Of a stretch of DNA of 64,000 nucleotides, positions 20,530 to 56,312 are shown piece by piece; the stretch's first letter is position 1; every line of letters begins with the position of its first letter. The notes beneath the pieces were generated by a model. It had not been told where the DNA came from and did not search any database. It worked only from the letters and a program-made list of their open reading frames with translations. Origin of the DNA: Marsupella aquatica (lineage: Eukaryota; Plantae; Marchantiophyta); the NCBI GenBank assembly GCA_973895155.1, contig OZ316899.1:4963241-5027240 (forward strand), written 5' to 3'. The position numbers and the translations under genes were made by a program.

Positions 20530-20770
20530 TAATCCTCTCCATTAGCTTTGGCGGTGGCTTCAAACTCATCCAACCATTCGTCTGGGTCATCCCCATGACG
20601 TCCCTTGAAAGGTTGGTAGTAGAACCTGGATCATTGTGATACTTGTGGAAGGGTTGGGGCCGCACGCGCTACTGTGGGTGGTGCTACCGCCATAGGTACT
20701 GGCGGAGGCGCAACTGGGCCTGAGCCTGCCGCACCGGGCCCAAACGGTCCCGGTGGGATGTTCATTCATT
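20530..20770 (-). pseudogene. Gypsy gag N-terminal remnant within a degraded LTR-element region (about 18.6-21.7 kb)
   Basis: GDDPDEWLDEFEATAKANGED is homologous to the gag at about 26000. Confidence 0.55.
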
Positions 20771-31355: not shown

Positions 31356-32014
31356 GGGGTCGTGTACTTCATCAGTTATCAATGAGTTTCACCAGTGATT
31401 GATATCGATCAGTCCAACACCGGAACTCAACGAATCAGTTGAGATGAATTCTTTTGGGGCACAACCCAATCCACAACCCAATCGCAGTCCGCGCCATTGT
31501 CGGTGCCTCTTTGAGGTTGGATCGGGTACTTTACTTCGACCATTTCTTATGTCGGTTGCCTCTCTGACATTAAAGGAGAATATAAAGTTTCAATCTTGGC
31601 GGCCTCTCTGAGATTTCCTCGAAGTTCAGTTGAATCTCAACAACCCCCGCCGAGATTCAACTGAAATTCGAGGAAAAAGAAATGGTTTTGACTAGCAGAT
31701 CAGCAAAAAAAAATCTTCTCACACACGGTCTTCGATATATCATGGGGTGTTGCTACTAAATCTCAAAAAGGATCCATACAACACATCATACAACAGAGTC
31801 CATACAACAGGTCCCTTTCAAAGACTCATCTCAAAGACCCTTGCCGACTTATCCAGGAGAGCTCGACATGACATTGAAAAACAACACGGGGTCGAGCGTT
31901 GAAAGTACAGGACTAGAACATAACCTTTGGAGGAAATTTTGATTTTACTTCGTATACAACATGTTGCTCTGTTGTGAAATATTCACAAATTGAGGCAATC
32001 CATCGATCCTCTAT

Positions 32015-32814
32015 CTACAAACTGATTGTCTGGCAGATTAGGTCTACAATTATCTTTTGTCGTATAAGCAGTAAATATTTAGGGTCAACCGCCAATACAG
32101 AGCCTCTAGAAAGACGCTCCATGTAGATTATGACGGATACTCCACAATTGTAACTATTGGGTTGGGCTGGAATATTGTCGCGGACAATGCGTTGCCATTG
32201 TAATGGCGATAAGTTGGGACAACTACGCAAGCAGGATAGGTCATGGAGAAATCGACCGACATTCACCAAATCGTTGCATTCCGATGCTTCGCCTCCAATG
32301 GGATCGAGCAAATGTAGTTGCTGCAAAGTAAAATTAACCACAGCTAGTACCCAATGTTTTGGCATGTGGATGGGGATTAGAATGAGGTCGAATGAAAAGA
32401 CGTTAATGCCCTTCATAAATGCCAATGCTGCGTTGAAGCTGTACGTTGGATGCGTCAAGACATTGTAAAAATGTGTGGGCAAAAGCATGCATTTGGGTTT
32501 TGCAGTGACCTCTGCTCTACGCTCCAATAGAGGAATGTAAGCATTGATGATGTCGCAAGTGAGCCATTTTTTTGCCCTCAAGCATTTGAAATCTTTTCTC
32601 TTCAATTTTAGGTCGTTGAGGCTGACTAGGACTTCATCTTGGTCCCTGTTGGGGTCCAATGCTTCTTTGACTATGGTTGCAAGTATGGCTGGTTGATGTC
32701 ATTGTGCAGGCACCCCCTGATTTGGTTGTTGGTGCACAGGCACCCCCTGATTGACTCCTTGCTGGGCAGTCACTGCCTCGTCGACTGGTTGTTGTGGCTC
32801 AGTTTGCTTCTGAG
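32015..32814 (-). CDS. Ulp1-like (peptidase C48) SUMO protease domain, probably the terminal exon of the upstream gene
   Basis: KWLTCDIINAY, IPIHMPKHWVLAVV, LLDP and QPNSYNCGV give an intact His-Asp-Gln-Cys catalytic set. A TTGCAG acceptor lies at about 32815, with one in-frame TGA upstream of the domain. Confidence 0.9.
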
Positions 32815-33335
32815 CTGCAATGAAGGTAAATTCACCCAAAAATTACTCTTCAGAATTGGAGCTTGACAAACTTATGCTTGCATGGTGAGTTTGGAGACTA
32901 TCACTATCACTTCCTACTGAGCTACTCTCATCCGATTCAGCCTCTTCTGCCCTATCATTGACAAATTTGAGAGTCTTCCTTGTTCTCTCTTTCACACAAT
33001 GAGCAACTCTTTCTTCATGATACGTATCATCGTAGCACGGTAGGCTTGACTTCTCCGAAGAGAATAATGCCGAAGCTTCCTCCCACGCGAGCTTCACAAG
33101 TTGTCTGTCCTATGTGTCCCATTCCTTGGTTGCCAACTCGGTGGTCCTGTCGGGAACTACTACTAAGTTATACTTAAATCGAATCATGTATTGCGCCAAA
33201 ATAGACGGATCACAAGAACACAAATTTGTGGGGCAAGTGAGCCGATATGGACACCCCAGATAATCCATTGAGTCGCCTTTCAAGATAGATCTCAAAGAGG
33301 CTAGCCAAGATGTATTTTTGTCCCTCTAGACGCAT

Positions 33336-33760
33336 CTAAGGCCCTACGTGGACTTGCCAGTAGAAGTTGACGTGGCCAGGCCATCCAAGATTCATTTGGG
33401 CGAGGCCCGCCGACATGCATCTCAGAGAGGCCCGCTGAGATGGACTTGCCTGGAAATCTGAATATGCCCAGGCCAGATGCGATTCCTCTTGGTGAGGCCC
33501 ACCAACATGCATGTCAGAGAGGCCAGCGAAGATGGACTTGCCTGGAAATCTGAATATGCCTGGGCCAGATGCGATTCCCTGTCTAGGCCCACCAACATGC
33601 ATCTCGGAGAGGCCAGCTGAGATGGACTTTCCAACAAATCTCAAAGTGCCCAGGCCAGATGGGATCCTCTCGGCTAGGCCCGTCGACATGCATCTTGGAG
33701 AGGTCAGCCAAGATGGATTTGCCCAGATGGAGAGCCATCTCGGAGAGTCCACTGAAATAC
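33336..33760. repeat. Intronic ~92-bp tandem repeat carrying GCCGA-type motifs
   Basis: About 4.5 units (e.g. 33471 and 33563) between a GTGAGT donor (about 33808) and an acceptor (about 33330) on the minus strand. Confidence 0.8.
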
Positions 33761-35589
33761 TACGGGACAATATTAAAATCATTGAAGGGAAACGGTAGTA
33801 AACTCACATGAAGGCTTTTTCTTCTTGCACTTTTCTGGATTGGATGTTTGACGATCCATTGCCTCCTCTTGCTCCGTTAGAGGCCCTCCAACAAACTCTG
33901 TCATTGTGTCTAACGCATAAGATTTGAAGTACGGATAGGATTTGGTCCCAAACACCATCTGCCCATAGTTCTCACTAGCCTTAAAGATAGCCCCGAAGTG
34001 TGCATTGAACGTGACAACAGTTCCCCCTTGCTTAGTTGTATATTCTATTATACATCGGAGTGTTGCTGGAGACAAGGTGCCACCAAAATCATCAATGGTC
34101 TCATTCTGACCCGTTGTATAGTTAGTTAGCCCATTCCTCAACTTCATATCAAGCTCGACACTGATTGGCTTCACGTCATCCTTTGGGCATACCTCGGCAG
34201 ACAATTTAAATCCCCAAAGGTCCAGCTTGAGATATTCACTCTGGACGTACAGAACAAAGTCAGCGATGAGTCTTTCTGAGTACAAGTCATCAAAAAACAT
34301 AAGACAAGAATAGAGTTAAATCTATTAGACTTACCCACTTTTGAGTCATCAAGTCAAAGGTAGGTATGGCATTCCAGATGAAAAAGGTGTCTTTCAGCAC
34401 CCAATTGGTCTCTTCGTAATTGAGATTGTCATAAAGTACTGCGGAGTGGGCAACCGAAGCACTGTGCACTACGCCAAACAATCCCTCATCATTGAGGAAA
34501 ACTCACGCAAAATCCTCAACCCGACTGAGGTCGTCTAGTCGGAACAAATTCCACAATGGGATGTTCCCATCCGCGTGCATGCGCATGTCTGATCCCATTT
34601 GAATCAGAATCAGATTTGCACCAGACCTTGAAGGCTTCCCGTTCTTTACCTAACCTTCTACAGCCAAACCACTCCGCCTAAGCTTTCTGCACCAGTCTCT
34701 AAAACGGAGTACAACAACTGGTTCTTTACTGTCATTGGCAGTGTCAAAGTAAGTTTTGAAAAGATACGGAGACCATTTAAAATAACAATGCCTAAGCTGG
34801 GAAGAGAAGTCATTGGCGCTTGCACGTCGAACTCCAACCACCTCTGTGCCATCCGACTCCGGTTTGACATATTGCACTTCAACGTCCTCTTCGTAATTTG
34901 GGCCATCCGTTGGGGCCTCATGTTGGATTGTTGTGGGCGGAACCTCTATTGGGCTAGGCGGGGGTTGTGGTATGGTGCTAGGCGGGGGTTGCTCTATGGG
35001 GCTGGGCGGAATGTCTTCAAGCTCAGTGTCACGTGCTTTTGTGCGGCGAGGTTTGGGCCTCGTTGTTTTGGTCTTTTTTGCAACCTTTGTCTTCGGCCTT
35101 GAGGATAATGGCATCCGTTTTGGCGCCGGAGTATCAGACTTGCGCCCCTCTTGTTTGTCTTCTCCTTTGTTCTCTACCCATTTGTCTTCTCCTTTGTCCT
35201 CTACTCGTTCATCTTCTCCTTTGTTATCTACCCGTCCGTCGTCTGAATGATCCCCTCCTTGGGTTGCGTTCTCACCTTGGGTTGCATTCTCACCCTAGGA
35301 TGCGTCATGCGCTTGTTGTTGCTCGCTTTGTTGGTCCAGAGGCTGGTCTACCATTGGCTCTGTCAAAGGCTGCACACTTTGTTGCTCCACTTGCTGGTTG
35401 CCTTGTTGTAGTGTAGCCGGCTCTATCATTGGTTCTGCAGTTGGTTCTGTAGCCGGCTCTATTGTTGGCTGTGGAGCCTTCTCTATAATTGGCTTTGAAG
35501 CCACTTCTACATCCTTGCTTTTTACAGAACCTGGTTCCTCTGGTATCTCCTTCATACCTGGATAGATTGCAAAGCAATGGGGTTATTGA

Positions 35590-35920
35590 TCCTAAGCTTC
35601 TCAGCGAGCCTCGCCGACATGACATCCAGACACTTGACATTATACTTCATCTCCAAAGGTCCGGACGACATTTGGCTGTTCTTCTCAGCGAGCCTCGCCA
35701 AGATGAGATCCATAGACACTAGACGTTATACTTTATCTCCAAGGGTCCGGATGACATTTGCATGTTCTTCTCAATGAGCCTTGCCGAGATGAGATCCAAG
35801 GGTTCAAACGAGATGCAACTGAAACTTCTTTGTTCTCAGTGAGCCTCGCCAAGATGAGATGCAGTCTATCTCAATGACCCCAAAATTGGTTCAGTACTAT
35901 GTTAGCAAACCCAGCCAAGA
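35590..35920. repeat. Intronic ~86-bp tandem repeat with GAGCCTCGCCGA motif
   Basis: Units start near 35597, 35683, 35766 and 35833, inside a predicted intron at about 35559-35970. Confidence 0.75.
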
Positions 35921-38900
35921 TGTAGTTCCAAATGAAACCACTATGCAGTGCAAAAGGAATCGAGTAATACCTGATGTTTTTCTTGGACTGGTTAGAGAGT
36001 CAGACTGACTGATGTCGCTTGATGGTTCCTTCTCAACCTTCCGTTCACCTTATTTTCTGGCCTTCTTCCTGTCATAGGCAGGGTCAGTTGGGATAAGGGT
36101 CTCCACCTCTGTTGCCTCTGTTACTGAATCTGACAGTTGTTGCAACTTTGTTATATTGTAGTAATTACTAGGTTCCCGTGCTTCTTTGAGCAGGTCTGCA
36201 CTATCCTTCTTGGCAACCTCGAGAAAAGTGTTCCAATTGTCATACTCCATGTACATGGGCAGTTCCTCCGTTCCCAATCCAAGAATACTCTGCCATGAGG
36301 CATGCGACCATCACATAGATATGTGCTAAGGCTACCTGTAGCTTCCATCCAAGATCTAATCGCCAATGGTAGTTGTTTCAACATTGTTGCATTCATGTTC
36401 TCCTGATGTATGAGAAATCTTGTCACGCACCGCTTTGTTTGCTTTATCCACGCTTCCCGAAACACCAATTTGGTATTCCCTTCATTCCAAATGTCATTAC
36501 CTACTTTTAAGGATTTCTCTTGCACATAAGATCGGTAAAGCTTTCTATAAAGCTCAGCAAATTCTCTCGCATTCCGCTAAAATTGCCAGCCTGGTAGGCC
36601 TTCTTAGCAAAATTGGTCAACAGGATACAACCAACGTAGTCGATGTAACACCACATTGACCACACTGCTAGCCATGATCTAACCGCTGAATCACTATTGC
36701 TACGTGGATGGTGATACCTACTCCTATCTTCCTCTGTTCCAAAATGAGCCTTCAAGAGTTTTAATTTGCACTCTGCAGTTAATCAAGCCCCAGAAAACAA
36801 GCGGATCCTGTCCATTCCAACCAGCACATTCATAACACCCTGCTTGGCCTCCTTTGCCAACTTGTGATAGAGCTGTCAACATGTCGGGATGAATTCAGCT
36901 CCATTGGCTGGATTCATGCAGGCCGCAAGCTTGGGGAACTTAGTGTCCCAGCTCTTGCACGCAGCAGTAATCATTGCCTCAGTCTCATGCTCAAGTCTCT
37001 TGGCATTCCACGGGTGCCCACGACCTGCGTCTTGTGCCATTTCCTTCAAAATATTGATTCGCCCCACTTCAATGTTTGACCAGCTCATGATGTACACAAC
37101 TGCCTCTTTTGTCATGTTCTTGGAGTACCAAGTCTTCTTGTGGCCACAATTTTGAGCCATCTCCTTCGACATAAGCAAACTGTACTCCTCCAATGGAGTG
37201 TTCAACAACTTTGCCACCCTATCGGCGTCATTGAACCATGACGTCCTTACGACAGTCGCGCTTATCTTGGACACGGCAAAGAATGTTCTTAGGTCTAACA
37301 TTCAAACAGGGCAATCTTTGACAGATTGCCAATAGGGTATTCACACAAGGGAAATGATATTGTATACCTGTTGTTGCAAAATGTGACTTACTTACGAGTT
37401 CAGAGCATGCATTGCTTGCTCAACCTTCTTGAATCCGTCCTGTCCAGCGTTCAAAAGAGAGAATCTGACACACGGATGGTATTGCGGTTGATCTGGAACT
37501 CCTCCGCAATTGCAGACCAAACTTCTTGTCCTTGAGCATTTTGAAGTCCTTTGACGCATCACACTCTTGCTCAAACTGCTCATTGATTTCAATCCACAGC
37601 GAGTCCCAATAGGGCTTGAACTCTGCCACTATCCTCGTTCCCCTACTTCGTTGAACTCAATGATGTGGCACTTTCTGAGCTTTACAACATAGCTGGTCTC
37701 TCTGAATCCTTTTTTTAGTTTGACCACTGACTCATCATGAAGATTCCTGACGGCCTCCATTGGCATGAGCCGGGGAGGATCCTTTTCAAACTTTGTCTCA
37801 TACTTGGAGACGATTGACTCCCAAGCTCCCTTCTCTGTAATATCTGCTAATTCCGCTGCTCCTATTGGCTCGAACGATATTTGCTTTGGCTCAAACTTCC
37901 TCCTTGAGTCCACTGACTCCACAAGGGGACCACCTTGTGAGCGTGTTAGTTGAGATATCACTGGCAAAGGGGACAAAGATTGTTGTTTCTTACTCCGCTG
38001 AGAAGTACCGCTATCAATAGGTCCAGCGACAGAACCAGCCGAGTCTTTCCTCTTCACCATTGTGATCTAAGATTATATGAGAAAACATTCAAGAATTACT
38101 TCACAATAACCATACATCTCGGCGAACCCCGTCGAGCAAAAGTTGACATGTTGAGCTTGCAACATACATTCAAATTGTGTAGACAGTCATGCAATGAACA
38201 AAAGATCCAACCTTGGAGATAGGTGAAGCGCCACGCTTGAAACTACAACCCACTGAGAGTGATTTGACCACCGCCGACTGAGACCTTCAAATCACCCTTT
38301 GCAGCACAAAGCTTGAAACTTTGAGAGTTGTCTGCTGCCCAGCTCAAACCAGACTGAGACCTTCAAATCACCTTTGCCAACCAGCATAGAGCTTGAAACT
38401 ATGAGACTCGACCGCTACCAAGGTGAAGCCTTCAAAACACCTTCGCAAACCAGGGCACACGGCCACACTTGCCAAGAATAAGTGGAAGAGAGGAAAGCCA
38501 ACGTGATTGGAAGACTGGGATGAAGAGCGGAGGGGACCTAGGAAGAGCGAGGATGCATGAGGAATAACGGGGAGTGAATGAGACAGGGAGTGAATGATGA
38601 AGAGTGAGGAAGCGTAGGGATAAGTGAGAAAGACGTTGAAAGCCCTAACGAAGAGTGAAGAGCAAGAGTGACAAGGAAGAGTAAGGAAGAAGGACCCTCG
38701 TACCGCACGTACCACACCGGTGACGAGGAAGAGTAAGGAAGGACCCTCGTACCGCACGTACCACACCGCACGGAAGTATGCCATGGATACGAGAGATCCC
38801 CGGTACCGCACCCCACACAAGTACATGGATACGGGAGATCCAAACTATACTATAGAACGTACATCTTGTTAATTAATGTGCCAAACAAGAAAGTACACGG

Positions 38901-38979
38901 CCAAACAAGAAAGTACATAAGGTTCTAGGGTTTACGGCCCAGTACGGGGGTATGAGATACGGCCAGTGTTTAGGGTTTA

Positions 38980-40440
38980 GGGTCCAAATCTCAAAGACCC
39001 TTGCCGACAATGGATAGTGGCCAATACTGAGACGTGTCAATCTCGGAGCCTCGTCCCAAAGAGGGAATGGGGGCCCACAATACAAGTCCAAATCTCAAAG
39101 ACCCTCGCTGAGAATGGATAGCGGGCCAATATTGAGACGTGTCAACATCTCGGAGCCTCGTCCCAAAGAGGGAATGGGGGCCCACAATACGAGTCCAAAT
39201 CTCAAAGACCCTCGCCAAGAATGGATAGCGGGCCAATACAAAGACCTCTAAACCTCTAAACCTCATAGTGGGCCAACCTCGTACTATATACCCTTGGATG
39301 GGGTATACAAAGCTGCAATGAGACATCACCAATAGATCTCGGAGACCCTCTCCGAGATGGCATGGTGTGCCACATCTGGCAGTCATCCTGTTTTGAAACA
39401 CTTGCAAAAGAGGGATTGTGGACAAGGAAGTTGACAATATAAATCCAAAAGACCCCTACTCCATGTCAGAGACCCTCACCAAGATAGAAAGGCGTGCCCC
39501 AAATGTCTTCACTTTATCTAGGAGACAGTTGCCGATGAAGAACTTCAGACACCTTGTACTCTTGGAGACCCTCTTCGAGAAGGAGTAGTGTGCATGAAAT
39601 GGCAATGCCTCTAAACTCTTGGACCATATCACGGGAGGAAAGGTAAGGCAGATCAGGCATCATGTCTCTCGGAGACCCTCTCCAAGATGGAATTGAGAGG
39701 CACTAGTCCCCCGCCGTGGGACCCAAGATGTTGGAGACCCTCGCCGAAATGGGACTATGGAACTAGAAACACTTCTCCGTACCATAAATCCATAAACTTT
39801 TTACAATTATCCGTACAAAACGACTCGGCAACTCCAAATTGACCATTTTCTCCTCTACAATGCTCAAATATATCTTGGAGACCCTCGCCAAAATGGGATT
39901 ATGGAACTAGAAACGCTTCTCCGTACCATGAATCCATAATTTTCTTACAAATATCCGTACAAATTGGCATTTTCTCTCCTTTACAATGCTTGAATATATC
40001 TCAGAGAGGCTCGCCGAGTATGATATGCACTCCAAACAACCAACACCAAACTCTGAAGTAGACCTGCGCCAAGGAGGCAATCTGGGAATCATACATCCAA
40101 ATCCATCTTAGAGACCCTCACCGAGTAAGAGACGGAATCAAAAGTTGATTATACTCCAACTCGGAGAGTCAATGTTGAACAGTCAATGTTGAAAAGACAA
40201 CAAATTTCCTACTAAGAAACTCTCGCTTACATGCCCCAAGAGACCCAAATAGATCTCAAAGACCCTCGCTGAGTAGGAGTAGGGATAAAAAGTTGATGAT
40301 GCTCCAACTCGAAGAGTTGATGTTGAACAGTCAATGTTGAAAAGTCAACAAATTTCCTACTAAGAAACTCTCGCTTACATGCCCCAGGAGTCTCGAATAG
40401 ATCTCAAAGACCCTCGCCAAGTAGTAGGGATAAAAAGCTG
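38980..40440. repeat. Intergenic repeat arrays rich in GAGACCCTCGCCGA
   Basis: About 105-bp units (38983-39240), about 145-bp units (39730-39950 and 40108-40440) and dispersed motif copies between the divergent genes. Confidence 0.8.
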
Positions 40441-40886
40441 ATGTAGGGCAAAGAGGGGATTGGGCCCGCACGAGGGATTGTGGGCCCGCACAATGGGACC
40501 TTCAAGACCACAACATGCAGAATGTACCATATCCACACATTGCAAAAATGTACCTTCTTGGCGGCTGCTGGCAATTAGGTACCTTCTTTGCGGTACAATT
40601 ATCGTTATAAGTACGTTGCGGGTCATACGGTTGTTCTACGCACGTTGTATCGTTATAAGTATTGTTCCGGGTCATACAATTTCTCTACGCATGGTGTTCG
40701 GAACGGTATTCTTGGCCGTAACTGGTATGTATAGGGGCTTTAACATTGAGCCTCAAAGTTTGTCATTTTAAGGGATGTCAGATCATTCCCTATGTGGATT
40801 CGGGAAACATGGCCTCTCTTGTGATTATCACATCTTTAACGGGGGATGTAGTTGTTTTTTGTAATTCTAATGTTGATAGTGTTTGA

Positions 40887-44635: not shown

Positions 44636-45054
44636 CATTGTATGTCGGCGGCCCTCGCTGACATTGTCTCCTTCTTCAGGAGATCATCTTGGCGACCCTC
44701 GCCGAGTCATCTAATCCTGGTGACCCTCGCCGATATGGACTTTAGGGTTGCGGGCCTAGGGTTAGGGGGTTAGGGTTTATAATATGACTGTTATAAGTAT
44801 AGGGTTATGGATTTATGTTGGCAAGGCTCAGATTTGACCCTAAACCCGCTTGGGTCCTTGGGATGAGGGTTGTTGCTTTGTTCAAAACTATGGATCCAAG
44901 TGCAGGCGGACGTGAGATGGTGATTGATAGGACACAAGAAAGGCTTACATCGGAATTGTAGACGCTTCTTGCTAGTAAAGAACAAGACCGTGCTTGCATC
45001 TGGAATCTCCCCTCCTCTCGTTATCCCCTACGATGTTGCCCTCCAGCCGGTAAC

Positions 45055-45538
45055 TTGATTCCGGGATTGCCTGATGATCTTGTGGAGTTGCACATATGGC
45101 CCCGGATCCAATCAATGTTGGAAGATGTTGTGCTTGTGGATGCTCCAGTGAGGAATATGTGCCTGATGGTCTGTTGCGCATATCAACAAGAAATGGAGAT
45201 ATTTGATAACAAACTCCATAGCATGGGCTGCAATGACTACTGCTGTGATATTTTGTGCCACAAGATGGCCTGAATTGACACCTCACTTCTTTTGTGAGTC
45301 AATGAGAGTGTTCCCATCAATTGATGTTTGGGCTTGGTTGGCTGATGATATCTTAAATGAGAGGATCGATTCCTGGTTATTATGTGATTCAGAGGAAGCG
45401 GACTGTTATCTGTCGATATATGGTGTTCAGCAAGAACGAGTAGATGCTTGGAAAAGGACTCGTCTTGATAATTGGTACACTGAGCAGGTTCAGGAAAGAC
45501 TTGATCAAGGTGTAAGTGTCAATCGTGACAACTTTTAG
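45055..45538 (+). pseudogene. F-box-like cargo gene 1
   Basis: LIPGLPDDLVELHIWPRI, then after a frameshift ...LITNSIAWAA. Paralogous to 52484-53266. Confidence 0.65.
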
Positions 45539-45765
45539 GTGCACTTCATGTCATTATCGGTTTAGTTTATAGAATACGCAGGAGTATGCCACACCTGGTT
45601 CAGATTTAGATATCATGGACTAATTTTGTAAGACTTGATGAAGGTGTAAGTGTCAATTGTGACAACTTTTAGGTGGACTTCATGTCATTATCGGTTTAGT
45701 TTATAGAATACGCAGGAGTATGCCACACCTGGTTCAGATTTAGAGATCATGGACTAATTTTGTAC
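45509..45765 (+). repeat. ~133-bp tandem duplication of the gene end and 3' UTR
   Basis: Two near-identical copies starting GGTGTAAGTGTCAAT. Confidence 0.9.
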
Positions 45766-47083
45766 GACTTTTTTGAGTAATAAAATACTTGGCGACATGA
45801 GATCCTTCTTGTCTTTCACTATCAATTCTCGGCGAGGGTCTTCAATATTTGGACCCTAAAACCCTAAATCTCTGAGATCAATCGTGTCATTCACTATCAA
45901 TTCTTGGCGAGGGTCTTTGAGATTTGGACAGGCAACCCTAAACACGTAACCCCCTATATTGGGCCGTAAATCCTAGACCTTGCATACTTCCCTTGCGTAC
46001 TTTCTTGTTTGGTCCGTTAACAAAATGTACGTTGTCAAGTATAGTTGGGATGTCCCGTATCCATGATGTAGTTTTGTGCGGTGAGGTATGTGCTTCCTTC
46101 TTCCTTACTCTTCCTCTTCCTCTTCACTCTTCGTTAGGGTTATCAACGTCTTTCCCACTTATCCCTGCGCTTGGTTGAATTTCTATACTTTGACATTCAT
46201 CGCACTGGGCAGAAATCACATCATTGTTCATTGCTTAGGGAGAGCCTCCCCTAAGCCTTCATGCCCGTTGCTCGACCGATGTGCAGCCCCTATAGGGTCA
46301 AGATCAACCCGCAAACTTTGCAGGTGGAGATCGTCGAAACCAATATGTCAATGTCGTTGTTGTTATAAAGAGGATGGTGTTACAAACCAAATACACCAAC
46401 AATGATTTGATCTTCTATTCCAAGGAGAGAATATATACATATGGTAACTCTGGTTGGAGTTAACCATGGATTCTAACTATAGTCAGTATACCCAATCATA
46501 GTTAGGGTATAACACTCCCCCTTGGGTGTTATCATTTTAGGAAAAATGTGACAACCAATCTTCTATCAATGTATATGAAGGTAGGTGATGGGGGTGCAAC
46601 CTCATTAAAACCTTCCCTACTTTCTTTTGTGGAAGGAAAGAGTATTGCCACCCTACATCCCTTTAAGTTTAAAATAAAGTTGTGTCTTTATAAAGTAATC
46701 TGTATTTGCGTTTGTCTATTCCCTACTTTTCTAGACTAATTGCGTTCAGAGTATATGTGTTTAGGTTTGTATTCTGGGTTGCGGTGTCGTTCTGCAAGAA
46801 GTTCATCAAGTGTAAGTGGTGTTGAAGTCGGTTGTATGAGAGTGGAATGGCGGGTTCTCTTTCACGCAGGTACTGTTGATGCCGGGGTGAGCTGCAATGG
46901 TTGGAGATGCATTTTCCCTGGGTCTTTGTGATAGTGTCAATCGGAGAGATGTCAGTGCGTCTTCTCGATGATTCATCAAGTTTTGCCTGTAGTTCTTCAG
47001 GAAGTCAAGTGCGAGGGGTTAGTCGATTGACTTATGTTCTGTCGGGCTGGTGCTGTTCGTTCTCGTAACGTTCATCAGGGAAG

Positions 47084-50000
47084 TCAAATCTCCCCCTCAA
47101 TCTTTGTATCCTGCAAAAGCTTTGTTGTGCTGCGTATTCCTATTGAATCAGTTAGTGATTGATGGAGGGACGGTGGTAGTGACTTTGTAAGGATATCTGC
47201 CTTGTTCTGATTTCCTGGAATCCATTGTACATCAATTTCTTTTCCTTGTTCGTGTGAGAAAAAGAATTTAGGCGCAATATGTTTTGTATGTTCGCCTTTG
47301 ATGAATCCGGTTTTGATTTGAGTTATGCAAGGCATGTTATCTTCGAAGAGTATTGTAGGTTTGGTTAATTTTGGTTTACTTGTGTTGATCAGAATATGAT
47401 CTAAGACTTTACGTAGCCATAAACACTCACGACTTGCTTCGTAGAGAGCAATTATTTTAGAGTGTTTGGAAGAAGTAGTAGTAAGTGTCTGTCTGGTGCT
47501 GCGCCATGAAATTGGTGTCGGGCCCATCAAGAAAATGTATCCAGTTTGAGATTTACCATCTTGTGGATCGGATAGATAGCCAGCGTCAGTATATCCTGTT
47601 AAACTGTAATCTGCATCATAAGGAAAGTATAAACCAAAGTCGGATGTACCAATAAGATAACGGAATATCCTTTTAATACCGTTTCAGTGTCTGATAGTGG
47701 GCTGTGCGCTGTGTCTTGCGAGTAAGTTGACCGCGAATGCTATGTCCGGTCGAGTTTGATTAGATAGAAACATAAGAGCACCGATAGCCGAAAGGTATGG
47801 CATATCTGAACCTAGTAAAGGTTCAAAATCTTCTCTCTTCCTGAACATATCTTTCTGTATGTCCAAGGTACGTATATCCATGGGGGACTTCACAGATTTT
47901 AACGAGTCCATATGGAAATGTTTTAACACCTTCTTTGTGTAAGTCTCTTGATGCAAGAGAATGCCCTTTTGTAAATGTTCAAATTGAAGTCCAATGCAGT
48001 AAGAAGTTATTCCTAAATCTCGCATTTCGAATACGCGTTTCAGCGTTTGTATAGATTCTTGCATCATCTTGTTTGTACCAAACAAGTTGAGGTCATCTAC
48101 ATAAATAGCAATTATTATGAATTCAGATCCTTGATTCTTTATGAATAGACAAGGTGCAATCTCTGAATTTTTGTATCCCATGGATATCATCTCTATTTTG
48201 AAATGCTGGTACCAGGTACGTCCACTTTGTTTTAGGCCGTAGAGTGAACGAAGAACCTGAATAGCAAATCGGGTCTTTCTATTTCCAGGAGTTTCCTGGA
48301 ATGCAATTGCTTTAGAGGTATTGTGGAGTACCAGCTTATTTAAGTAGTCAAATTCATTTGCATGTTTGTCACTATGCATATTTGAATCATGATTTGAATT
48401 CACATGGAAATTGACACGCTCTATAAGCTGTGGTGGAGCTTCCATATAGATCACAGTGTCAAGTTGACCGTAAAGATAAGCGGTCACCACATCTAGTTGA
48501 TGCATTAAGAGTTTATGTTGGATTGCAAATGCTATCAAGTAGCGGTAAGTAGTTACATCCATGACTGGTGAATAAGTTAGGTCATAATCTGTGCCATAGA
48601 TTTGAGTATATCCCTTTGCAACGAGTCGAGCTTTATATCTCACAATTCTCCTTGGGAATTCCTCTTTTTGGTAAATATGATTCTGTACCCTTAAGGTGTT
48701 GGTCTGGGGAAGCAATGGTTATAGGACCAAATACTTTTCGAGAGATCAAAGAGTCTAACTCAGAGTTCATGGCTATTTTCCATTTAGGCCAATCTGTTTG
48801 GTTTTGTGCTTCTTTGACAGATTTCGGGTCAGGTAAGTTAGTAATATCCTGTGATATATGAAAGGCAAATTGATCATCAGGTATTACTCTAGTTCTATCT
48901 AAGATATGGCCAGTGGTATTATAATGTATGGCTATCTCTGGGTGATATGATTCTGAAATGTGAGTATGGGTTTTTGGTCTCATTTCAGATGATGTTGGTA
49001 GTTTTCGCCTTTGTCTGAGTTGTTTATCGACAGCCCCTACAGGGCGTCCTCTCTTGGGTTTTAATTGTTGATCAGAAGCTAACTGAGTTCCAATTTGAAT
49101 CCGGGATGGGGTATTCGCTGCTGGGATATGGGATTTTGTAACATTTGCTGTATCTGCGAATGAATCAGGTATGGCTTCCATAATCTTTGTAAGTTGAATT
49201 ATTCTTCTGACTTCTACTTCAGCCTGATCTGTGCATGGATCAGGACAGAGTTCAGGACTAGCTTGCCAGGTGAATATTTTTGGTAATGATTGTTGTTTGC
49301 CCTCTGGTAATGTCAGAGTGGGGAAGATGGTTTCATAAAAGTGACAATCTGTAAATCGAGCTTTGAATATGTCTGCAGTGGTAGGTTCCATGTAACAGAT
49401 GATCGATGTAGAGTCGAATCCCACATAGATGCCTTTTCTTCTCTGAAGTCCTAATTTTGTCCGTTTTGGACCTAGGATTGGTACAAGGACTTGACATCCG
49501 AATATCCTCAAGTGTGAAATGTCTGGAGAATTACCAAATGCCAATTGATGAGGTGTAATGCTGTTGAAGGCTGATGGTCTGTATAGAAGAAGAGATGCAG
49601 CATGTAGGACTGCGTGTCCCCATGCACTTGCTGGAAGAGAAGATTGCATTAATAGAGGTCGAGCTATTTGTTGTATGCGTTTAATAAGTGACTCGGCCAT
49701 TCCATTTTGGAAATGTACATAAGGTACATTGTATTGTGAATCAATTCCATTGATGAGGCAAAATTCATCAAAAGTTTTTGATGTGAACTCTCCGGCTCCA
49801 TCAGTCCTGAGGGTTCGAATTGGGTATTCTGGGAATTGAGCTCTCAGCCATATAATGTGTGCCAGAATCCTTGAGAAAACGAGGTTCCGGGTTGATAATA
49901 GGGAAACCCTTGACCACTTGGAGCTTGCATCTATGACGACCAGGAAATAGCGGAATGGGCCACTGGGAGGATCAATGGGTCCGCAAACATCTGCATGGAG

Positions 50001-52049
50001 TCTCTCAAGAAATGCAGGTATGTGATTTTTGGTTTTAAAATTGGAGGGAGCAGTAATCATCTTGCCCTGTGAGCAGGCAAGGCATGGTCCTTTGAATGTT
50101 CTAGGATGTACTCCTTTTGATACTCCTTTAGAATTATTGACAATTCTGTGGAACATGCTTGTTCCAGGATGTCCCAACCGTCTATGCCAGATCTCTATGA
50201 GGTTCTATGATTCAGTTTGAACATGGTAGCATTGAGTTCGAGTTGCATAGATCCTAAAGGGTAAGCCTGTAAAGTTTCTTTAACAAGTCTGCCTTTTGAT
50301 GAGTGAGATACTATTTGTAGAACTTCTCGTGAGTCTTGAATATCTGTATGAATATGTAGGTTATTCGCTCTTATGTCTTTAAAGCTGAGAAGGTTTCTCG
50401 TTGCTTTGGGGGCATAAATCGCTGATGTGATGTTGATTATTCTTCGGGTATGGCATGCGTGACAGTAAACAGGAAACAGGTTTACTGGTACTAGTAAAAA
50501 TTTTCCTATTACCAGCAAAAATTTACTGTTACCAGGAAAAATAACAATGTCAAAATATTTTCTAAAACGTCAAATTTTCCAAAAACAATTAAATTATAAC
50601 ATTTTTTGGCTAGCTTTGGGTGCTAGCATTACCAGCGCCGGGCGCTAGCAAAAATAATAATATTCGCAACAAAAAAAACTTTTTTTTCCAAAAAAATAAT
50701 TTCAAAAATAATTTCCAAAAAATTTCCAAAAAAATTATCACTCATTTTCCTGTTACCAATTTCTGTTTCCTGTTACTGTTTGCTGTTTCCTGTCGCTTGT
50801 AAATACCCCTTATTGTTCCTTCTGGGAGAACTACTGTGGCTTTGCCATGACTCTCCTCTATTTGATGTGGTCCCATGATAGTTGTTATTTTCCTTTGTGA
50901 AGGGGTGATTTCGTAGAAATATTTATTGTCTCGAAGGATAGTATGGGTTGTGCCGCTGTCGACAATGCAAAAATCTGGATCTTCAATACTTAATGATGAA
51001 TCCAGCATATGTATTTCTGGTATAATCTCTGGTGAGTCCAAATAAGCCCCATGTGCTTCAAATTGCGATTCATCCAAGCTCTTCTTATAAAGTAGAACTA
51101 GGTGGCTAGGTGCATGGCATACCTTTTTGGTGTGCCCTTTAGTTCCGCACCTGTTGCATGTAATGGGATGCTCTTGTTTATAACTTGAGGTAGGTCGTTG
51201 TCGCTCCCGATTTTGTTGTTGATGATCCACTCTACCACTCTTCCAGTTGTTTCGATTCGCATTGTTCATTCTTCCACGACCTCTTCCTCTGTAGCTAGAA
51301 CTGCTTCCACCTCTTTGGGAGAAATTTCCTCTCCCTCTCATTATTCCTCGGCCACGGTATGAACCTCTCCCCCTATATGTGTATCCATTTGTATTTGTCA
51401 TATTTGTTTCTATTGTCGTATCCTGTGTAACTAAGTTGGTTTCAGTTTTAGTTGGTACAGGAAGTGTTCCCGGAGGTCTCTCCTTTGCATTATTCATAAG
51501 GAGGATGGGATTTTGCTCTACTAAAAGCATATGAGCAATGAGCGTCGAGTAGGTCGTAAAAGCCATGTTCCTGTACTGATTTGAAATCACCAAGTTAGTT
51601 GGGTGAAATGTGGCTAATGTCTTTTCGATTTGTTGTTTATCACTGACTGGTTCTCCATACATTTGGAGTTCATTTGAGATTCTAAACATCTCATTGTTGT
51701 ATAAATCTACTGATTTGAAATCTTGTACTCGTAGAGTAACCCAAGCCTGTAGAGCATTCGGCAGATTTTTTGTAGTGATATGCTCAAATCTTGATTTCAA
51801 TGCATCCCAGAGTAATCTAGGATTGTATGCAGTCTTATACTGGCGTTTGAGAGGATCGATTAAGTGATGTCTCAGTAGTACCAAGGCTTGTGCCTTCGTG
51901 TATTGATCCACACCGACGTCTATGTGTATGGCCTCTTCAATTCGTTTTGCCGTGAGATGGACCTCCACATCTATATACCAATCATTGTAATTCTTGCCAT
52001 CAATTTGCAAAGCTGGAAATATAAGTTTTTCAATGGAGTTCGATGTCAT
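47084..52049 (-). pseudogene. Copia gag-pol
   Basis: CNRCGTKGHTKKVC, IVDSGTTH (protease), integrase HADVCGP..RTDGAGEF..NGMAES, RT YKARLVAKG, LYGLKQSGR, IYVDD, and RNase H KHI/ADILTK. Frameshifts and a MITE insertion. Confidence 0.95.
50446..50809. mobile_element. Non-autonomous MULE (364 bp) related to element C, inserted in the Copia protease
   Basis: Ends GGGTATGG... and ...AAATACCCC. 9-bp TSD TTATTCTTC/TTATTGTTC. The right end matches 59508 onward. Contains AGCGCCGGGCGCTAG at 50634. Confidence 0.85.
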
Positions 52050-52483
52050 TCTGGTATCAAGAATGTCTAATTGTTTTTCGAATGGATGTTTGGGGAGTCG
52101 TTCTAAATGTGTATCAAACTGATGTATGTTTTCAAATCTATTTTGTGAATCATCCCCATTATCATTTTCTAAGGGTACGATGTTTTACTGAAGAAATAGT
52201 CTGCATACATTGCCCAAGTGTTGACAAATATGCATAACTGCCAAGTATAACTGCCTTGACATTGAATGACCCCTTAAAAAAAATTCAAGAGCACTCTCGT
52301 GCTGATAACATGTTACAAACCAAATACACCAACAATGATTTGATCTTCTATTCCAAGGAGAGAATATATACATATGGTAACTCTGGTTGGAGTTAACCAT
52401 GGGTTCTAACTATAGTTAGTATACCCAATCATAGTTAGGATATAACAGATGGCACTTTCTCTATTCTTGATCCGCTTGTTTGG

Positions 52484-53266
52484 TTGGTTGGTTGTTGTGT
52501 TCAATCTGTTGGGTGTTGTCTTCATCTCACGGGCTCTCCAATTATATTGTACAACATGGAAGGATCATACACAAAGAGGCGCTATCATGAAAAGTGTGTT
52601 ACACGCCTTGATAAGTTTACGACGACAATTACTGAGCTGAAATTGAAAGCTGATTTTGATCGGCTCTCAATATGGGGGACTATTGGGAAGCCTATTCCGA
52701 AGGAAGCAGAAGAAGAAAAAAGGCAAAGTCTCATCCCTGGCCTCCCGGATATGCTGATAGAGGGACATGTTTGGCCTCTACTTAGAAATGCATTTGAGTC
52801 TGCAAATGCACATGGCACTGATGATGATGCTACCTTCAAGACAATTGACAACATGCGCATATTGTCCAGAGTTAGTAGGAAATGGAGATTCCTTGTGACT
52901 CACTCAAAGGGATGGGCAGCGTTAAAAGTGGTGAAGGACGTCATTGAAAACATGGACGACAACCGACATTGGAATCGTCACTCAACCGCATGTACGTTCT
53001 ATGTTCTCTTACGTCAAATTCCGCCTATTGATGCCCTCTCTATGATGTCAGTTACATCACTCAAGTCTTGGGTGGCAAACTATGTCTGGAGGATGAAGAT
53101 ATATGAGAGGGATCTGTATGATAAGTTTTTTGATGGAGATGTGCTAGGAAGAGTCCAGGACTGGGTGGAGAACAAATTAACCCCAATCTTATGGTGTGAC
53201 AATGTAGAAAAATTGCCGAGCAACAATCCGGACAATGGCTACGGGCTTTATTCTAGTGATATTTGA
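52484..53266 (+). CDS. F-box-like cargo gene 2
   Basis: SLIPGLPDMLIEGHVWPLL...LSRVSRKWRFLV are the F-box N- and C-terminal motifs with an insertion. Open frame; likely ATG at about 52556. Confidence 0.7.
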   Translation: MVGCCVQSVGCCLHLTGSPIILYNMEGSYTKRRYHEKCVTRLDKFTTTITELKLKADFDRLSIWGTIGKPIPKEAEEEKRQSLIPGLPDMLIEGHVWPLLRNAFESANAHGTDDDATFKTIDNMRILSRVSRKWRFLVTHSKGWAALKVVKDVIENMDDNRHWNRHSTACTFYVLLRQIPPIDALSMMSVTSLKSWVANYVWRMKIYERDLYDKFFDGDVLGRVQDWVENKLTPILWCDNVEKLPSNNPDNGYGLYSSDI

Positions 53267-53559
53267 TTGTGAAGGCACAGGAGGTCATCGTGGATAGCAT
53301 TGTTGGTAGGGTCCACTGGCCACTAGGTCATGTCATGACTTGAACTCATCACGTAGTAATGAGGTTAGGGCTAGCATCATGGACTAATTTTGCACGATAT
53401 TTTTCAATAATAAAAAATCTTACGTTATTACACTATTGGTGTGGTCTTTTTTCTCTCCCGACGGCCTTGCCAACATCCAAACGGCATCGTTGGAATTTGG
53501 CAAGGGTCTCCAAGATGTAGTGTTCCTGAACCCTACTCACCTTGGAGACATTTGCCGTT

Positions 53560-54040
53560 TGTCGGATCTTAGCGACCCTCGCCAAAATGGCACTGAAACC
53601 GGATGTTAGCGACCCTCGCTGAAATGGCATTGAAATTGGATGTCGGCAACCCTCGCCGGAATGGCACTGAAATCGGATGTCAGCAATCCTCACCAAAATG
53701 GCACTAAAACCGGATGTTAGCAACCCTTGCCGGAATGGCATTGAAATTGGATGTCGGCGACCCTCGCCGGATGTCAACGACCCTTGCCAAAATGGCACTG
53801 AAACTGGATGTTATTGACCCTCGCCGAAATGGCACTGAAATCGGATGTTAGCGACCCTCGCCGGATGTTAGCGACCCTTGCCAAAATGGCACTGAAATAG
53901 GATGTCAGTGACCCTCACCGGAATGGAACTTCGCCTGAATGGAAGATCCCAACCGGATGTCTGCGACCCTTGCCAAAATTGCACTTACCAAGAAAAAGTA
54001 AGAAACTGGATCTCAGAGACCCTCGCCGACATGGAACTTA
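53560..54040. repeat. ~37-bp minisatellite, unit GTTAGCGACCCTCGCCGAAATGGCACTGAAACCGGAT
   Basis: About 10-12 variably diverged units, each containing the element motif. Confidence 0.9.
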
Positions 54041-54707
54041 GGATCATAATCTTGACCGTTGCCAAGTGAGAGAACCGCCAGATCTCTGAGATCTACTTAC
54101 ACCCTAAACTCTTTGTCGTCAAACTAACAAAGAAGTCGCTGGCCTCTGATCTCAGAGATCCTCGCCGAAATGGGATTACGTAGTAACTGTGGAATCATAC
54201 GCTCATACAGTGCCAAAAACTAATCCTGACAGTCTTGACCGTTGTAGGTCAAATCAACATTAACTCATTTGTTGGCCAAACCTGGAGTGTGTGTGAAAAG
54301 ACATGTACCCATTATTACGAGCGGACGTCATTGTCCCTTCAATCGTCTAGGGATAGGATACCAATAATTGCTGGATTTTTAGTAGCGATGATGATGATCG
54401 TCTTGTACGTTGCAGGTCACCTCAACACGGACTAGATAGCGTTGACGGAAAGTGACATGCATGTGAATAGACATGTACCCGTTATACGTACGCCGATTGC
54501 TTCCATTACCCAATCCCGGTTAGTACATATTTGGTGTGATATTCGAGTGGGCGTTTGGTATATGATGTGAATCAGTCATTCCATCCAGACTCATTCTTAT
54601 GAAAGTCCTTCGTAAACATGGCGCAAACAAAGATGGAGGTGAAGGCAATGTGGCAGCGCGGTGCGCCCTCCAATTTTTTACCTTCTTTCTCATCAGAGTA
54701 GAGCACC

Positions 54708-55502
54708 ATGGCCAGAGTGGAGTCTGTGATCGGTATCCAAGACATGCACACACCCATTGTCTACACCATTTTGGGCGTCATCCCACAGAAGAGGAAACAA
54801 GGTCGGCCAAGGAAGCATCCCATTGTAATGTCGATAGCATTACCTAATAATGAAACTCATCGGCTCTTGACAGAGAAGAGGAAACAAGGTCGACCAAGGA
54901 AGCATTCCATCGTAATGTTGATTGCATTACCTGATAATGAAGATCCTCGGCTCTTGACAAATAAGAGGAAATGAGGTTGGCCGAGGAAGCATCCTATCGT
55001 AATGTTGATCGCGTTACCTGATAATGAAGCTCCTTGGATTTTGACAGAGAAGAGGAAACGAGGTCTCCCTAGGAAGCATCCTATTGCAATGGCTACCACA
55101 CTGCTAGACGGTGATGGTGAAACTCCTCGTCTATTGAGATCTTCAGATAATGGCAAGGCTGTTGGTGGTGCAAACAGAATGAACAAGAAGTTGAAGATGC
55201 CCGTAGATGGTGTGGCTAAGTTCCGCGGTTGTGACAACACAACCAGCCACAAGGACTCGCCCAATGCCGAGTGTTCAAAATATGTTGATGTTGACTTTGG
55301 GTTTGCTAAGGAGTTGCTAAAGAGTTTGGATGCGGAGATCGCAGACAGCAAGTCAGACTTCCAGAAGCTTATGAGCCTTCATGTAGATGTGCAAGCTAGG
55401 CTATCTGAGATGTGTGACAACGTCCAGAATCTATGGGTAAAAATGAATGACCTCCTCTCGGCAAGAGCTGAATTGGGGACGTTCACTGGAGTGAATGTAT
55501 GA
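54708..55502 (+). pseudogene. AT-hook repeat + coiled-coil cargo gene
   Basis: Four 29-aa (87-bp) repeats KRK(Q/R)GRPRKH..., one containing a TGA. C-terminal heptads. Confidence 0.7.
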
Positions 55503-56312
55503 AAAACATGAATTTCGTGTACACATTTAATTGTAGGAAATAGCGGAACGTTGTAGCCTCAAAGTTTTGATACATTTTGGTAGTTACTGAATCGTTCGTT
55601 GGTAATGATTTTATGGAGTGTCAAATTAAACTGGACGATGATAGTAGAAATCCATCTGATGGGCTGTGTAATCCAAATCTTATGAAACATTTTGTGCAGA
55701 TTAGGTAGCTTAGTTATACAGCACTGAATCTGTCATGGTAAAGTCGACGCCCCTCGCCGAGAGCATTTTCCAAGGCTTGACAAGTAGGAGTAGCAGTCTC
55801 TTGACGATGTCTTCTTGGCGAGCATCACCAAGGAATGACAATGGGTTCATGTTACCTTTTCTTCTAAGCTCTCTTATTGGGCAAACATCTTGATCTTTTG
55901 GTGGTTGCAACTGATCCCAAGGATTCTACACTGCATCACAATTCTCGTTGATTACTTCTTTCAAGGCTGGCACCACCAGCAGCCTAGTAGTAGTATCTCA
56001 ATGATGTCTTCTCGGCAAGCATTGCCGAGGAATGACAATATATGGGTTGTAAAATATTTTTCTAGTAAACTTCATGTCGGTGACCTCTTTGACATTCTGA
56101 CTATGGTCGCCTAAAATTGTACAGACACCGCCTTTATGCTTATTGCTTTGTGTTTCAAGACCGTAAACCCTGAATCGGAGATGTTTGCGAGTTTGTCGAG
56201 ATCCTTGGGCCAATCTGAGCACAGCCGCCGACATGCAGGTAAGTGTTAAGCGCGACAAGCAATGACTAATATCAGTTATCAATCATTGATAATTGATGAT
56301 GTACCTTTACTC

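Follow-up and report, generated by a model that had tools for sequence, protein, structure and literature searches.

A 19-kb copy from a Mutator-like transposon family of liverworts with a ParB-like accessory gene and a lineage-specific palindrome

We analysed a 64,000-nucleotide window of the genome of the liverwort Marsupella aquatica (GenBank assembly GCA_973895155.1, contig OZ316899.1, positions 4,963,241 to 5,027,240 of the forward strand). Window positions 31356–56312 hold a single DNA transposon, here called element B, which measures 18,882 bp after subtraction of a nested 6.07-kb Copia retrotransposon. Element B belongs to a multi-copy family of Mutator-like elements (MULEs) that is, as far as our searches reach, restricted to liverworts. 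The core of the family, shared with Riccia sorocarpa, consists of a transposase gene, a ParB/methyltransferase-like (MTase-like) accessory gene and a lineage-specific palindrome. To this core, the lineage of element B has added a C-terminal Ulp1/SENP module and, on the far side of the transposase, two or three F-box-like paralogues, followed in this species by an AT-hook/coiled-coil gene. The accessory protein has about 1200 residues and comprises an N-terminal domain of predicted ParB/Srx fold, a helical middle region and a degenerate β-class N4/N6 DNA-methylase-like C-terminal domain that lacks the catalytic motif. This descriptive account of the element and its family is very probably correct. 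We also propose, far more tentatively, that the ParB-like protein binds the palindrome and thereby counters silencing. Family description and mechanism taken together form the best explanation that we can offer, with a probability of roughly 0.6.

Results

Termini, target duplication and insertion site

An earlier note on this DNA had read the region as one element of about 19 kb, bounded by terminal inverted repeats (TIRs) and a target-site duplication and carrying a nested Copia, and this reading holds. The 22-nt inverted core GTACWTCATCARTTATCAATGA occurs in the window solely at 31364–31385 (+) and 56283–56304 (−), against a chance expectation of 0. The two cores are identical at 20 of 22 bases and lie inside terminal regions of about 50–65 bp. 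The ends are asymmetric, as the outer 12 nt differ between left and right, and each type is kept in a 528-bp non-autonomous relative that lies elsewhere in the window (Table 1). In the alignment, the start of this relative (GAGTAAAGTTACATCATCA) is of the right-end type of element B, while its end, read as the reverse complement (GGGGTAGCGAGGATCATCA), is of the left-end type. Since both end types recur in the relative, 31356 and 56312 are the exact termini of the family.

Element B is flanked by a 19-bp direct repeat, TCAGTTTT[T/C]CTGGCCTGTC, with 18 of 19 bases matching. The duplication around the 528-bp relative is 9 bp long (GGACAACGC and AAACAACGC, 7 of 9 bases matching), and the criterion for a MULE target-site duplication is 8–11 bp. 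The difference between 19 and 9 bp amounts to about one helical turn, and one may speculate that the ends of element B attacked the target one turn further apart than is usual.

When element B and one copy of the repeat are removed in silico, a 148-codon frame on the minus strand opens across the junction, with a LINE-endonuclease-like tail (G.FYT...SRLD...LDHIPV). The restorable target claimed in the earlier note is thus borne out as a frame with LINE-like motifs, but Pfam searches of its two pieces did not confirm L1. On the basis of the motifs, an L1/LINE identity of the target is plausible. The LINE-like target adjoins Ty3/gypsy-like sequence. Between 22000 and 31000, the window contains such sequence in duplicate (22.2–24.9 kb and 26.5–29.0 kb, 75–98% at the protein level) with a strong negative GC skew, and the gag domain lies at 25328–26014.

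A palindrome specific to the lineage of element B

The non-coding DNA of element B carries many copies of a 21–23-bp dyad with the consensus ATCTCGGAGA-N3-TCTCCGAGAT, in which half-sites of 9–10 bp form perfect dyads. Over the whole window, the pattern TCTCNRMGASSCTYKCYRAGA gives 42 strand matches, corresponding to about 27–30 sites, all of which fall within 31635–54170; the chance expectation is 0. No match to this pattern was found in the nested Copia or in the rest of the window outside element B. A looser half-site pattern adds one site, which lies within the 528-bp relative (14917–14939). In the window, the palindrome is restricted to element B and this relative. The sites are scattered over all non-coding parts of the element and continue through its right-hand part, and some occupy conserved places within the transposase gene and shortly past it. 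A conserved core other than the palindrome is present in the terminal 60 bp.

The proteins nearest to the open reading frames (ORFs) of element B come from two liverworts, Calypogeia fissa and R. sorocarpa. The same palindrome is present in C. fissa, where three loci contain 15 (L001), 50 (L002) and 38 (L003) sites at up to four mismatches. It is kept although protein identity to the C. fissa transposase is as low as about 60% and synonymous sites are saturated, a divergence at which neutral non-coding DNA would not preserve it. The window sites are more degraded than those of C. fissa, mostly, as we read the site lists, by G to A changes at CpG positions (TCTCGG to TCTCAG or TCTCAA). Such decay would fit an old, methylated and silenced copy.

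A sister element in the window, element C, has a palindrome of its own, TAGCGCCNGGCGCTA, with 10 matches (up to two mismatches) between 58854 and 63629. One further match falls within the nested Copia at 50633 and none in the DNA of element B proper. The palindrome of the Riccia locus L004, CGGCGGASTCCGCCG, is 13–15 bp long, present in at least 12 copies and different from that of element B. The palindromes are therefore lineage-specific, kept between species and replaced between lineages.

Element B also contains a pair of internal inverted repeats (Table 1). These enclose the transposase and F-box-like module in both species, the corresponding arrays of L002 lying at 3507–4220 and 15309–16025. 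They could be the remnant of older TIRs or functional arrays.

An accessory gene with ParB-like and MTase-like modules and an apparently appended Ulp1

The large accessory gene is a multi-exon gene on the minus strand, running from about 38066 down to 32846. Our searches of it were made exon by exon, without a spliced, joined protein model. Its N-terminal domain is broken in element B, but an intact orthologue exists in C. fissa L002 (1728–2282), where it bears the motif VFDGNHRFSAW; the deletion and frameshift of the window copy fall exactly there. An AlphaFold model of this exon, built from a 19-row alignment, has a mean pLDDT of 77.5. In Foldseek, the top rows for the model are almost all of ParB/Srx fold, with sulfiredoxin at E 9e-3 (probability 0.99), followed by Noc, ParB-CDP, KorB, SerK and PadC. 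VIA, which is independent of Foldseek, likewise places ParB/Srx proteins in all of its top 8 rows, including KorB (Z 6.0, rmsd 3.3, 93 residues), PadC (5.9) and Arabidopsis Srx (5.5), after which Z drops to 2.3. We accepted the ParB/Srx call because the match lists, modest in score, are uniform; the model supports it at the level of the fold only.

Sequence profiles gave no comparable signal. Pfam and NCBIfam searches of exon-sized ORFs from element B, from elements A and C of the same window, from L002 and from L003, together with ten full-length Riccia and C. fissa proteins, returned no ParB family and no MULE family. Searches against PDB sequences, using phmmer with three exons and a hidden Markov model (HMM) of a 35-sequence family alignment, returned low-complexity noise only. 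The fungal family DUF3723 was considered for the full-length Riccia protein P0025 and dropped, as the best Atlas score (0.80) is at chance level and no paper linking DUF3723 to ParB was found.

In P0025, the middle region (residues 310–710) forms an all-helical domain of about 400 residues, modelled at pLDDT >90 and without a clear structural match; a weak resemblance to the Spo0J HTH region (Z 4.8) is confined to its first part. A phmmer search with the middle domain against 1.84 billion representatives retrieved 71 proteins, and every named one is from a liverwort.

The methylase-like part is conserved across the family as a set of homologous exons, found in element B, element A, L003 and Riccia, and the L003 exon matched by element B (17423–17797) is also matched by exons of elements A and C. 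In element C, the exon at 60733–61101 scores 29.2 bits against PF01555 (cut-off 26.7) over a stretch that spans the C-terminal S-adenosylmethionine (SAM)-binding motif, and an NCBIfam DNA methyltransferase model matches at 5e-5. Pfam gave no match to the element B exon at 33782–34315. In the B lineage, the G-x-G loop has degenerated (...DFSARNGA... in C. fissa, ...TFNAHFGA... in the window), but Riccia has kept it (...DFAGGWGA...). A DPPY-type motif is absent from all lineages read, the relatives having LPTG or DMPSG in its place. The earlier note had called this a ParB-MTase-like gene. The MTase-like domain lacks the catalytic motifs and, in the B lineage, also the SAM-binding motif. The methylase-like label suits the family, in which the domain is recognisable only in the sister lineage, and is weak for the element B copy.

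By contrast, the Ulp1 module that the earlier note had reported is a solid identification. Its ORF is intact (Table 1), and the catalytic His, Asp, Gln and Cys align to those of SENP2 (1tgz).

No ParA-like ORF was found among the ORFs of element B, and the accessory system is not a ParABS partition system.

Transposase

The transposase gene runs divergently from the accessory gene and has frameshifts relative to L002 near 41522 and 43395. It had been described as a GCM/MULE/SWIM transposase, which we can follow in part. In the Atlas feature search with a 412-aa ORF of L002, MULE/ZSWIM RNaseH-like clusters came first (score 0.96, 177 shared features) and the ten best matches all belonged to one clan. 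A SWIM-type motif, CSCKDF...CKH, can be read in 44237–44635. Pfam searches of the window and L002 transposase ORFs, however, found no MULE-type DDE domain (PF10551 or PF00872), and SWIM stayed below threshold. Assignment to the Mutator transposases is weakly founded.

Relatives define a core and lineage-specific additions

The divergent arrangement of transposase and large ParB-like gene, noted earlier for the window, is kept in both C. fissa and Riccia. In L002, a ParB-like gene on the minus strand (272–2282) is followed by a 6-kb spacer filled with palindromes, a transposase on the plus strand (8.4–12.3 kb) and three F-box-like genes. In L003, the order is ParB-N, middle domain, MTase-like exon and Ulp1-like stretch. 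The gene order of the window thus recurs in two segments, in L002 for ParB-like (−), transposase (+) and F-box-like (+), and in L003 for ParB, MTase-like and Ulp1. In R. sorocarpa, L004 (CM100798.1, 4035–14176) carries a MULE-like transposase head-to-head with the ParB/MTase-like gene P0025, which encodes 1191 aa; no Ulp1 and no F-box-like genes were found in this locus.

Comparison of C. fissa copies with one another indicates purifying selection on all three genes, with dN/dS at 0.18 in the transposase, 0.33 in ParB-N and, as a rough value from 82 codons, 0.37 in the F-box-like gene. The terminal core of element B was not found in L001–L003, and the end region of L003 is decayed. Directly past the Ulp1 end of L003, positions 19697–21712 contain a LINE reverse transcriptase (RVT_1, 1.5e-29), such that a LINE adjoins the element there, as in the window.

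F-box-like and AT-hook genes

Downstream of the transposase, element B carries two F-box-like genes and an AT-hook ORF. The two F-box-like genes of the window and four from C. fissa form a set of six paralogues with the common pattern LPD..I...WP...VS+KW+.LV. The AT-hook ORF encodes two exact KRKQGRPRKH motifs, one degenerate KRKRGLPRKH and a coiled-coil tail. All three genes named in the earlier note are present, but their domain assignments fall below Pfam thresholds, and we regard the F-box and AT-hook calls as suggestive at most. A search of 5.8 billion proteins, covering proteins of 0.55–1.75 times the query length only, found no homologue of either the F-box-like or the AT-hook ORF. Contigs from sequencing runs of this species and of one second organism are the only sequences in which we saw the AT-hook gene. 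Copies differ in their number of 87-bp AT-hook repeats, as joints that either go back or skip within window 54700–55130 occur in contigs of all four runs.

F-box-like gene 2, the AT-hook ORF and perhaps Ulp1 might alternatively be host fragments, captured passively or chimeric and without a role, as in Pack-MULEs, so that the 19 kb would reduce to a two-gene MULE and junk. The lack of homologues for F-box-like gene 2 and the AT-hook ORF is in line with this view, as are the absence of the AT-hook gene from the C. fissa loci, the lack of F-box-like genes and Ulp1 in the Riccia element, and the broken state of F-box-like gene 1 and the AT-hook ORF in element B. It is nevertheless unlikely. Two species have F-box-like paralogues at an equivalent place behind the transposase, at two or three per element and with a dN/dS of 0.37. 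Ulp1 is found behind the MTase-like exon also in C. fissa, and the window Ulp1 has kept its catalytic residues. Furthermore, the palindromes run through the right-hand part of element B, which is as multi-copy as the rest.

Copy number, the nested Copia and decay

The nested Copia is flanked by a 5-bp target duplication, GATGG, at 46373–46377 and 52448–52452, and its gag, integrase and reverse transcriptase are identified by Pfam. To survey other copies, Logan contigs from four public runs of two organisms were compared over window 51400–56900; such contigs attest presence and rough multiplicity, long-range gene order being beyond their reach. In the four runs, summed contig depth over 52.4–56.37 kb is about 10–50 times that of a single-copy flank contig, and it falls off past 56368. 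In run X2, interior contigs have depths of 107–129, compared with 16.6 for the exact single-copy junction contig. The right-hand cargo of element B is multi-copy up to the terminus, and so the cargo, whose absence from other copies would have spoken against the earlier note, is present in them.

One contig runs left from 52451 into a match of window 46347–46376 (26 of 30 bases). At least one other copy is therefore free of the Copia, with its left and right halves contiguous. Loose contig ends at 56302 were also considered as a consensus right terminus, and this was rejected; a better explanation is that other copies align there on the inverted core with their GGGGT-type left ends.

These data also bear on whether element B is composite. 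A MULE of 7.6 kb, bounded by the internal inverted repeats (38.6–39.0 and 45.9–46.2 kb), might lie inside, or be fused with, a second element that supplied the ParB-like and right-hand genes. Long TIRs are typical of many MULEs, the inverted repeats of about 280–410 bp (73–83%) do bracket the transposase and F-box-like gene 1, and comparable inverted arrays exist in L002. Yet one palindrome type fills the inner and outer parts alike, the divergent transposase and ParB-like pair is shared by C. fissa and Riccia, both outer ends are seen again in the independent 528-bp relative, and another copy has 46.37 kb contiguous with 52.45 kb. A composite origin is thus very improbable, and we retain the reading of a single element.

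The copy in the window is an old, inactive relic, because its ParB core is deleted, the transposase and F-box-like gene 1 are frameshifted, the AT-hook ORF contains a stop, a Copia has inserted and its palindromes are more variable than those of C. fissa.

Table 1 Features of element B and of its small relative, in window coordinates
Feature	Position	Strand	Evidence or remark
528-bp non-autonomous relative, outside element B	14586–15113		Both end types, one clear palindrome site, 9-bp duplication
19-bp flanking duplication, left copy	31337–31355		18/19 match to 56313–56331; abuts terminus
Left terminus, GGGGT... type, conserved core TCATCAGTTATCA	31356–31420	+	Same type at the 15113 end of the small relative (reverse complement)
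Ulp1/SENP (C48) protease domain, ORF intact	32018–32698	−	Pfam PF02902 1.3e-20; SENP2 1tgz 1.4e-23
Conserved C-terminal exon of ParB/MTase-like protein (LPCY motif), then acidic linker	32846–33109	−	Translations match A 3115–3300, C 60390–60587 and the tail of Riccia P0025
Palindrome-bearing tandem array, ~91-bp unit	33285–33723		Repeat and palindrome scans
MTase-like 'motif I' exon, degenerate SAM-binding loop	33782–34315	−	37% identity to L003 17423–17797, E 1.8e-22
MTase-like N-terminal part (region of degenerate motif IV in relatives)	34461–34877	−	tblastn with C exon 61403–62134: 24% over 141 aa, E 4e-6
Palindrome-bearing repeats, ~85-bp unit	35597–35868		Repeat and palindrome scans
Conserved helical middle region of ParB-like protein, several exons	35951–37301	−	tblastn to A, C, L002, L003
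ParB/Srx-like N-terminal domain, broken: DGNHR core deleted and frameshift	37395–38066	−	Compared with intact L002 (VFDGNHRFSAW)
Internal inverted repeat, left arm	38610–39019		73–83% complementary to 45892–46172; analogous inverted arrays in L002
Divergent intergenic region, dense palindromes and tandem repeats	38982–41237		Repeat and palindrome scans
Transposase gene: N-terminal Cys/His finger, DDE-like core, C-terminal CxCx15CxH (SWIM-type)	40803–44632	+	60% identity to L002
F-box-like gene 1, frameshifted	44962–45538	+	Paralogue alignment: LIPGLPD...WP motif, then frame change
Internal inverted repeat, right arm	45892–46172		Partner 38610–39019
Nested Copia LTR retrotransposon	46378–52447	−	Long terminal repeats (LTRs) 137 bp, 98% alike; GATGG duplication; Pfam gag, rve, RVT_2
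F-box-like gene 2, 260-codon ORF	52484–53266	+	Pfam F-box E 0.038, sub-threshold; paralogues at same position in L001, L002
Tandem array, 37-bp units, each with half or whole palindrome site	53525–54177		Repeat and palindrome scans
AT-hook and coiled-coil ORF, 87-bp repeats, one in-frame stop (54972–54974)	54702–55499	+	KRKQGRPRKH twice and degenerate units
Right terminus, GAGTAAAGGTAC... type	56248–56312	−	Same type at the left end of the small relative, 14586
19-bp flanking duplication, right copy	56313–56331		Abuts terminus

Discussion

A candidate self-recognition system

The palindrome is kept between species, replaced between lineages and spread over every non-coding part of the element, and for these reasons we propose an element-encoded dimeric, sequence-specific DNA-binding protein that would read the 23-bp palindromes in the non-coding DNA and thereby mark copies of the element as its own. 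The ParB-like protein would be the likeliest to do so, through the helical region that follows its N-terminal domain, and its action would resemble that of ParB on parS or of VANC on the repeats of VANDAL elements. It is the best candidate because of the ParB–parS precedent and because red-algal ParB genes lie beside inverted-repeat arrays. The methylase-like domain may then serve as a non-catalytic scaffold or DNA reader, while host factors that depend on SUMO or ubiquitin would be the targets of Ulp1 and the F-box-like proteins on the chromatin so bound. The net effect would be that silencing is countered or transposition aided. We advance this mechanism tentatively and at less than even odds.

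Another protein of the element could also read the palindrome. Mutator transposases bind repeats in their ends, and subterminal and internal repeats are read in other DNA transposons. The palindromes may accordingly be binding sites of the transposase, recognised by its N-terminal Cys/His finger of WRKY/GCM type and used to assemble the transpososome or for autoregulation. This would leave a different task to the ParB-like protein, perhaps that of an NTP-dependent clamp or a nuclease-like factor. The position of sites at conserved places in and just past the transposase gene accords with this, as does the 528-bp relative, which has sites but no genes, and in a 2026 preprint the AtMu1 transposase is reported to activate cognate copies in a sequence-specific manner (10.64898/2026.08.24.746577). 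On the other hand, a dimeric helix-turn-helix (HTH) protein of the ParB kind would match perfect dyads with half-sites of 9–10 bp better than one zinc finger would. Instead of clustering at the ends, where the terminal 60 bp have a different core, the sites extend over all of the non-coding DNA, and the red-algal ParB accessory genes likewise lie beside inverted-repeat arrays (bioRxiv 10.1101/2025.02.11.637652). We therefore regard transposase binding as rather unlikely, and retain the ParB-like protein as the candidate reader.

Several observations weigh against the account given here, and the transposase zinc finger as an alternative reader is the main rival among them. ParB was not recognised by Pfam, NCBIfam or the PDB profile search, and the fold-search scores for ParB/Srx are modest. 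An HTH after the N-terminal domain is only hinted at in the structure search with the P0025 model (Spo0J, Z 4.8, level with noise), and the MTase-like part of this full-length model has a pLDDT <50. The Pfam SWIM match on the L002 exon (E 0.014, 15.4 bits) is under the 19.6 cut-off, and element B gave no match. Pfam F-box matches range from E 0.007 to 0.15, always at profile positions 20–41 and under the gathering score; AT_hook reaches only E 0.64, and the AT-hook gene is absent from the C. fissa loci L001–L003. The 19-bp duplication of element B is out of line with the 9 bp of its small relative. Finally, no RNA run containing element B DNA was found.

In its fullest form, the proposal would be a liverwort MULE system for self-recognition and anti-silencing, of an origin independent of VANC. 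Its reader, a dimer derived from ParB, would recognise a rapidly evolving palindrome of 13–23 bp with which the non-coding DNA of the element is saturated and, in the B lineage, bring a fused SUMO protease, F-box adaptors and an AT-hook protein to the element's own chromatin, so as to strip SUMO- or ubiquitin-dependent silencing factors from its own copies only. This version is doubtful. Caution also applies to the description of the cargo in the earlier note as a toolkit for manipulating host chromatin, SUMO and ubiquitin systems, a role that is at most putative.

Comparison with known systems

The closest parallels are the accessory proteins of giant algal transposons. In Ectocarpus, the 21.5-kb Sola1-1_Ec32 encodes a 1104-aa protein with ParB-like and N4/N6-methyltransferase parts opposite the transposase (PMC12477816). 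The Bostrychia genome contains giant Plavaka elements with ParB-2OG and N6-methylase-SET accessory genes (PAG2/PAG3) and inverted-repeat arrays, and homologues of these red-algal accessory genes occur in Mutator elements of Chondrus (bioRxiv 10.1101/2025.02.11.637652). Fusions of ParB-HTH and Dam have been catalogued in chlorophytes and chytrids (PMC4738411). As in our family, one large algal protein joins a ParB-type domain at its N terminus to a domain resembling N4/N6 methylases of prokaryotes. It is encoded opposite the transposase of an element of about 20 kb and beside inverted-repeat arrays, two arrangements that we see in the window, L002 and Riccia L004. Binding and modification of the element itself have already been proposed by the algal authors for their protein. 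The present family differs in its land-plant host, its Mutator-like carrier and its methylase-like domain, which has no catalytic motif and, in the B lineage, no SAM loop. It differs further in the 400-residue helical middle and in the Ulp1, F-box-like and AT-hook modules, the algal proteins having been compared by description only.

The earlier claim that the combination is undescribed was accordingly too strong, as ParB and methyltransferase accessory genes opposite a transposase have been published (PMC12477816; bioRxiv 10.1101/2025.02.11.637652). The general design, with ParB-plus-methylase accessory genes opposite the transposase in algal transposons, is already known. Liverwort MULEs built in this way did not turn up in our literature search. 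New here are the conservation of the palindrome between species, the conserved F-box-like paralogues, the distinction between core and lineage-specific cargo, and the 19-bp duplication as against 9 bp.

Among land plants, the Arabidopsis VANDAL MULEs encode a VANA transposase, the Ulp1-like VANB and the anti-silencing factor VANC (PMC5735166, PMC10398659), the last being the functional analogue of the reader proposed here (PMC5735166). VANDALs and element B are both Mutator-like elements with a Ulp1 domain, and both repeat short lineage-specific motifs, often in tandem, in non-coding DNA, with the motifs differing between related elements. No VANC homologue turned up here, our searches having included no comparison to the VANC reference sequence. 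In addition, the candidate reader is of predicted ParB/Srx fold, and Ulp1 is apparently appended to the accessory gene. In place of a short asymmetric word, the liverwort motif is a dyad of 23 bp.

With bacterial ParB–parS systems (Spo0J, KorB, Noc), the likeness lies in the predicted fold of the N-terminal domain, for which KorB, Noc and ParB stand among the top matches, in a DGNHR motif placed where ParB/Srx proteins have their nucleotide-binding box, and in a multi-copy palindromic target. In contrast, the liverwort system has no ParA partner and no match at the sequence level; it is eukaryotic, spliced and transposon-borne, and the DGNHR motif is deleted in the element B copy. KI-MULEs and Pack-MULEs, which are plant MULEs that carry Ulp1 or captured pieces of host genes, share with element B the combination of a C48 protease domain and additional ORFs. 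Here, however, the extra genes are conserved in order between species, under purifying selection and within the palindrome system of the element, and they are not recognisable host gene fragments.

Biological significance

With its fused Ulp1 and conserved F-box-like paralogues, the family may have the SUMO and ubiquitin pathways as host targets. A palindrome that is conserved across transposases of about 60% identity, yet differs between sister lineages, offers a concrete and testable protein–DNA pair. Should the proposed mechanism be true, its reader would derive from a ParB module of prokaryotic type, which would link the liverwort elements to the ParB/methylase accessory genes of brown, red and green algae. 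The family would then be the second independently evolved case, after Arabidopsis VANC, of a land-plant transposon that encodes a reader of its own lineage-specific motifs.

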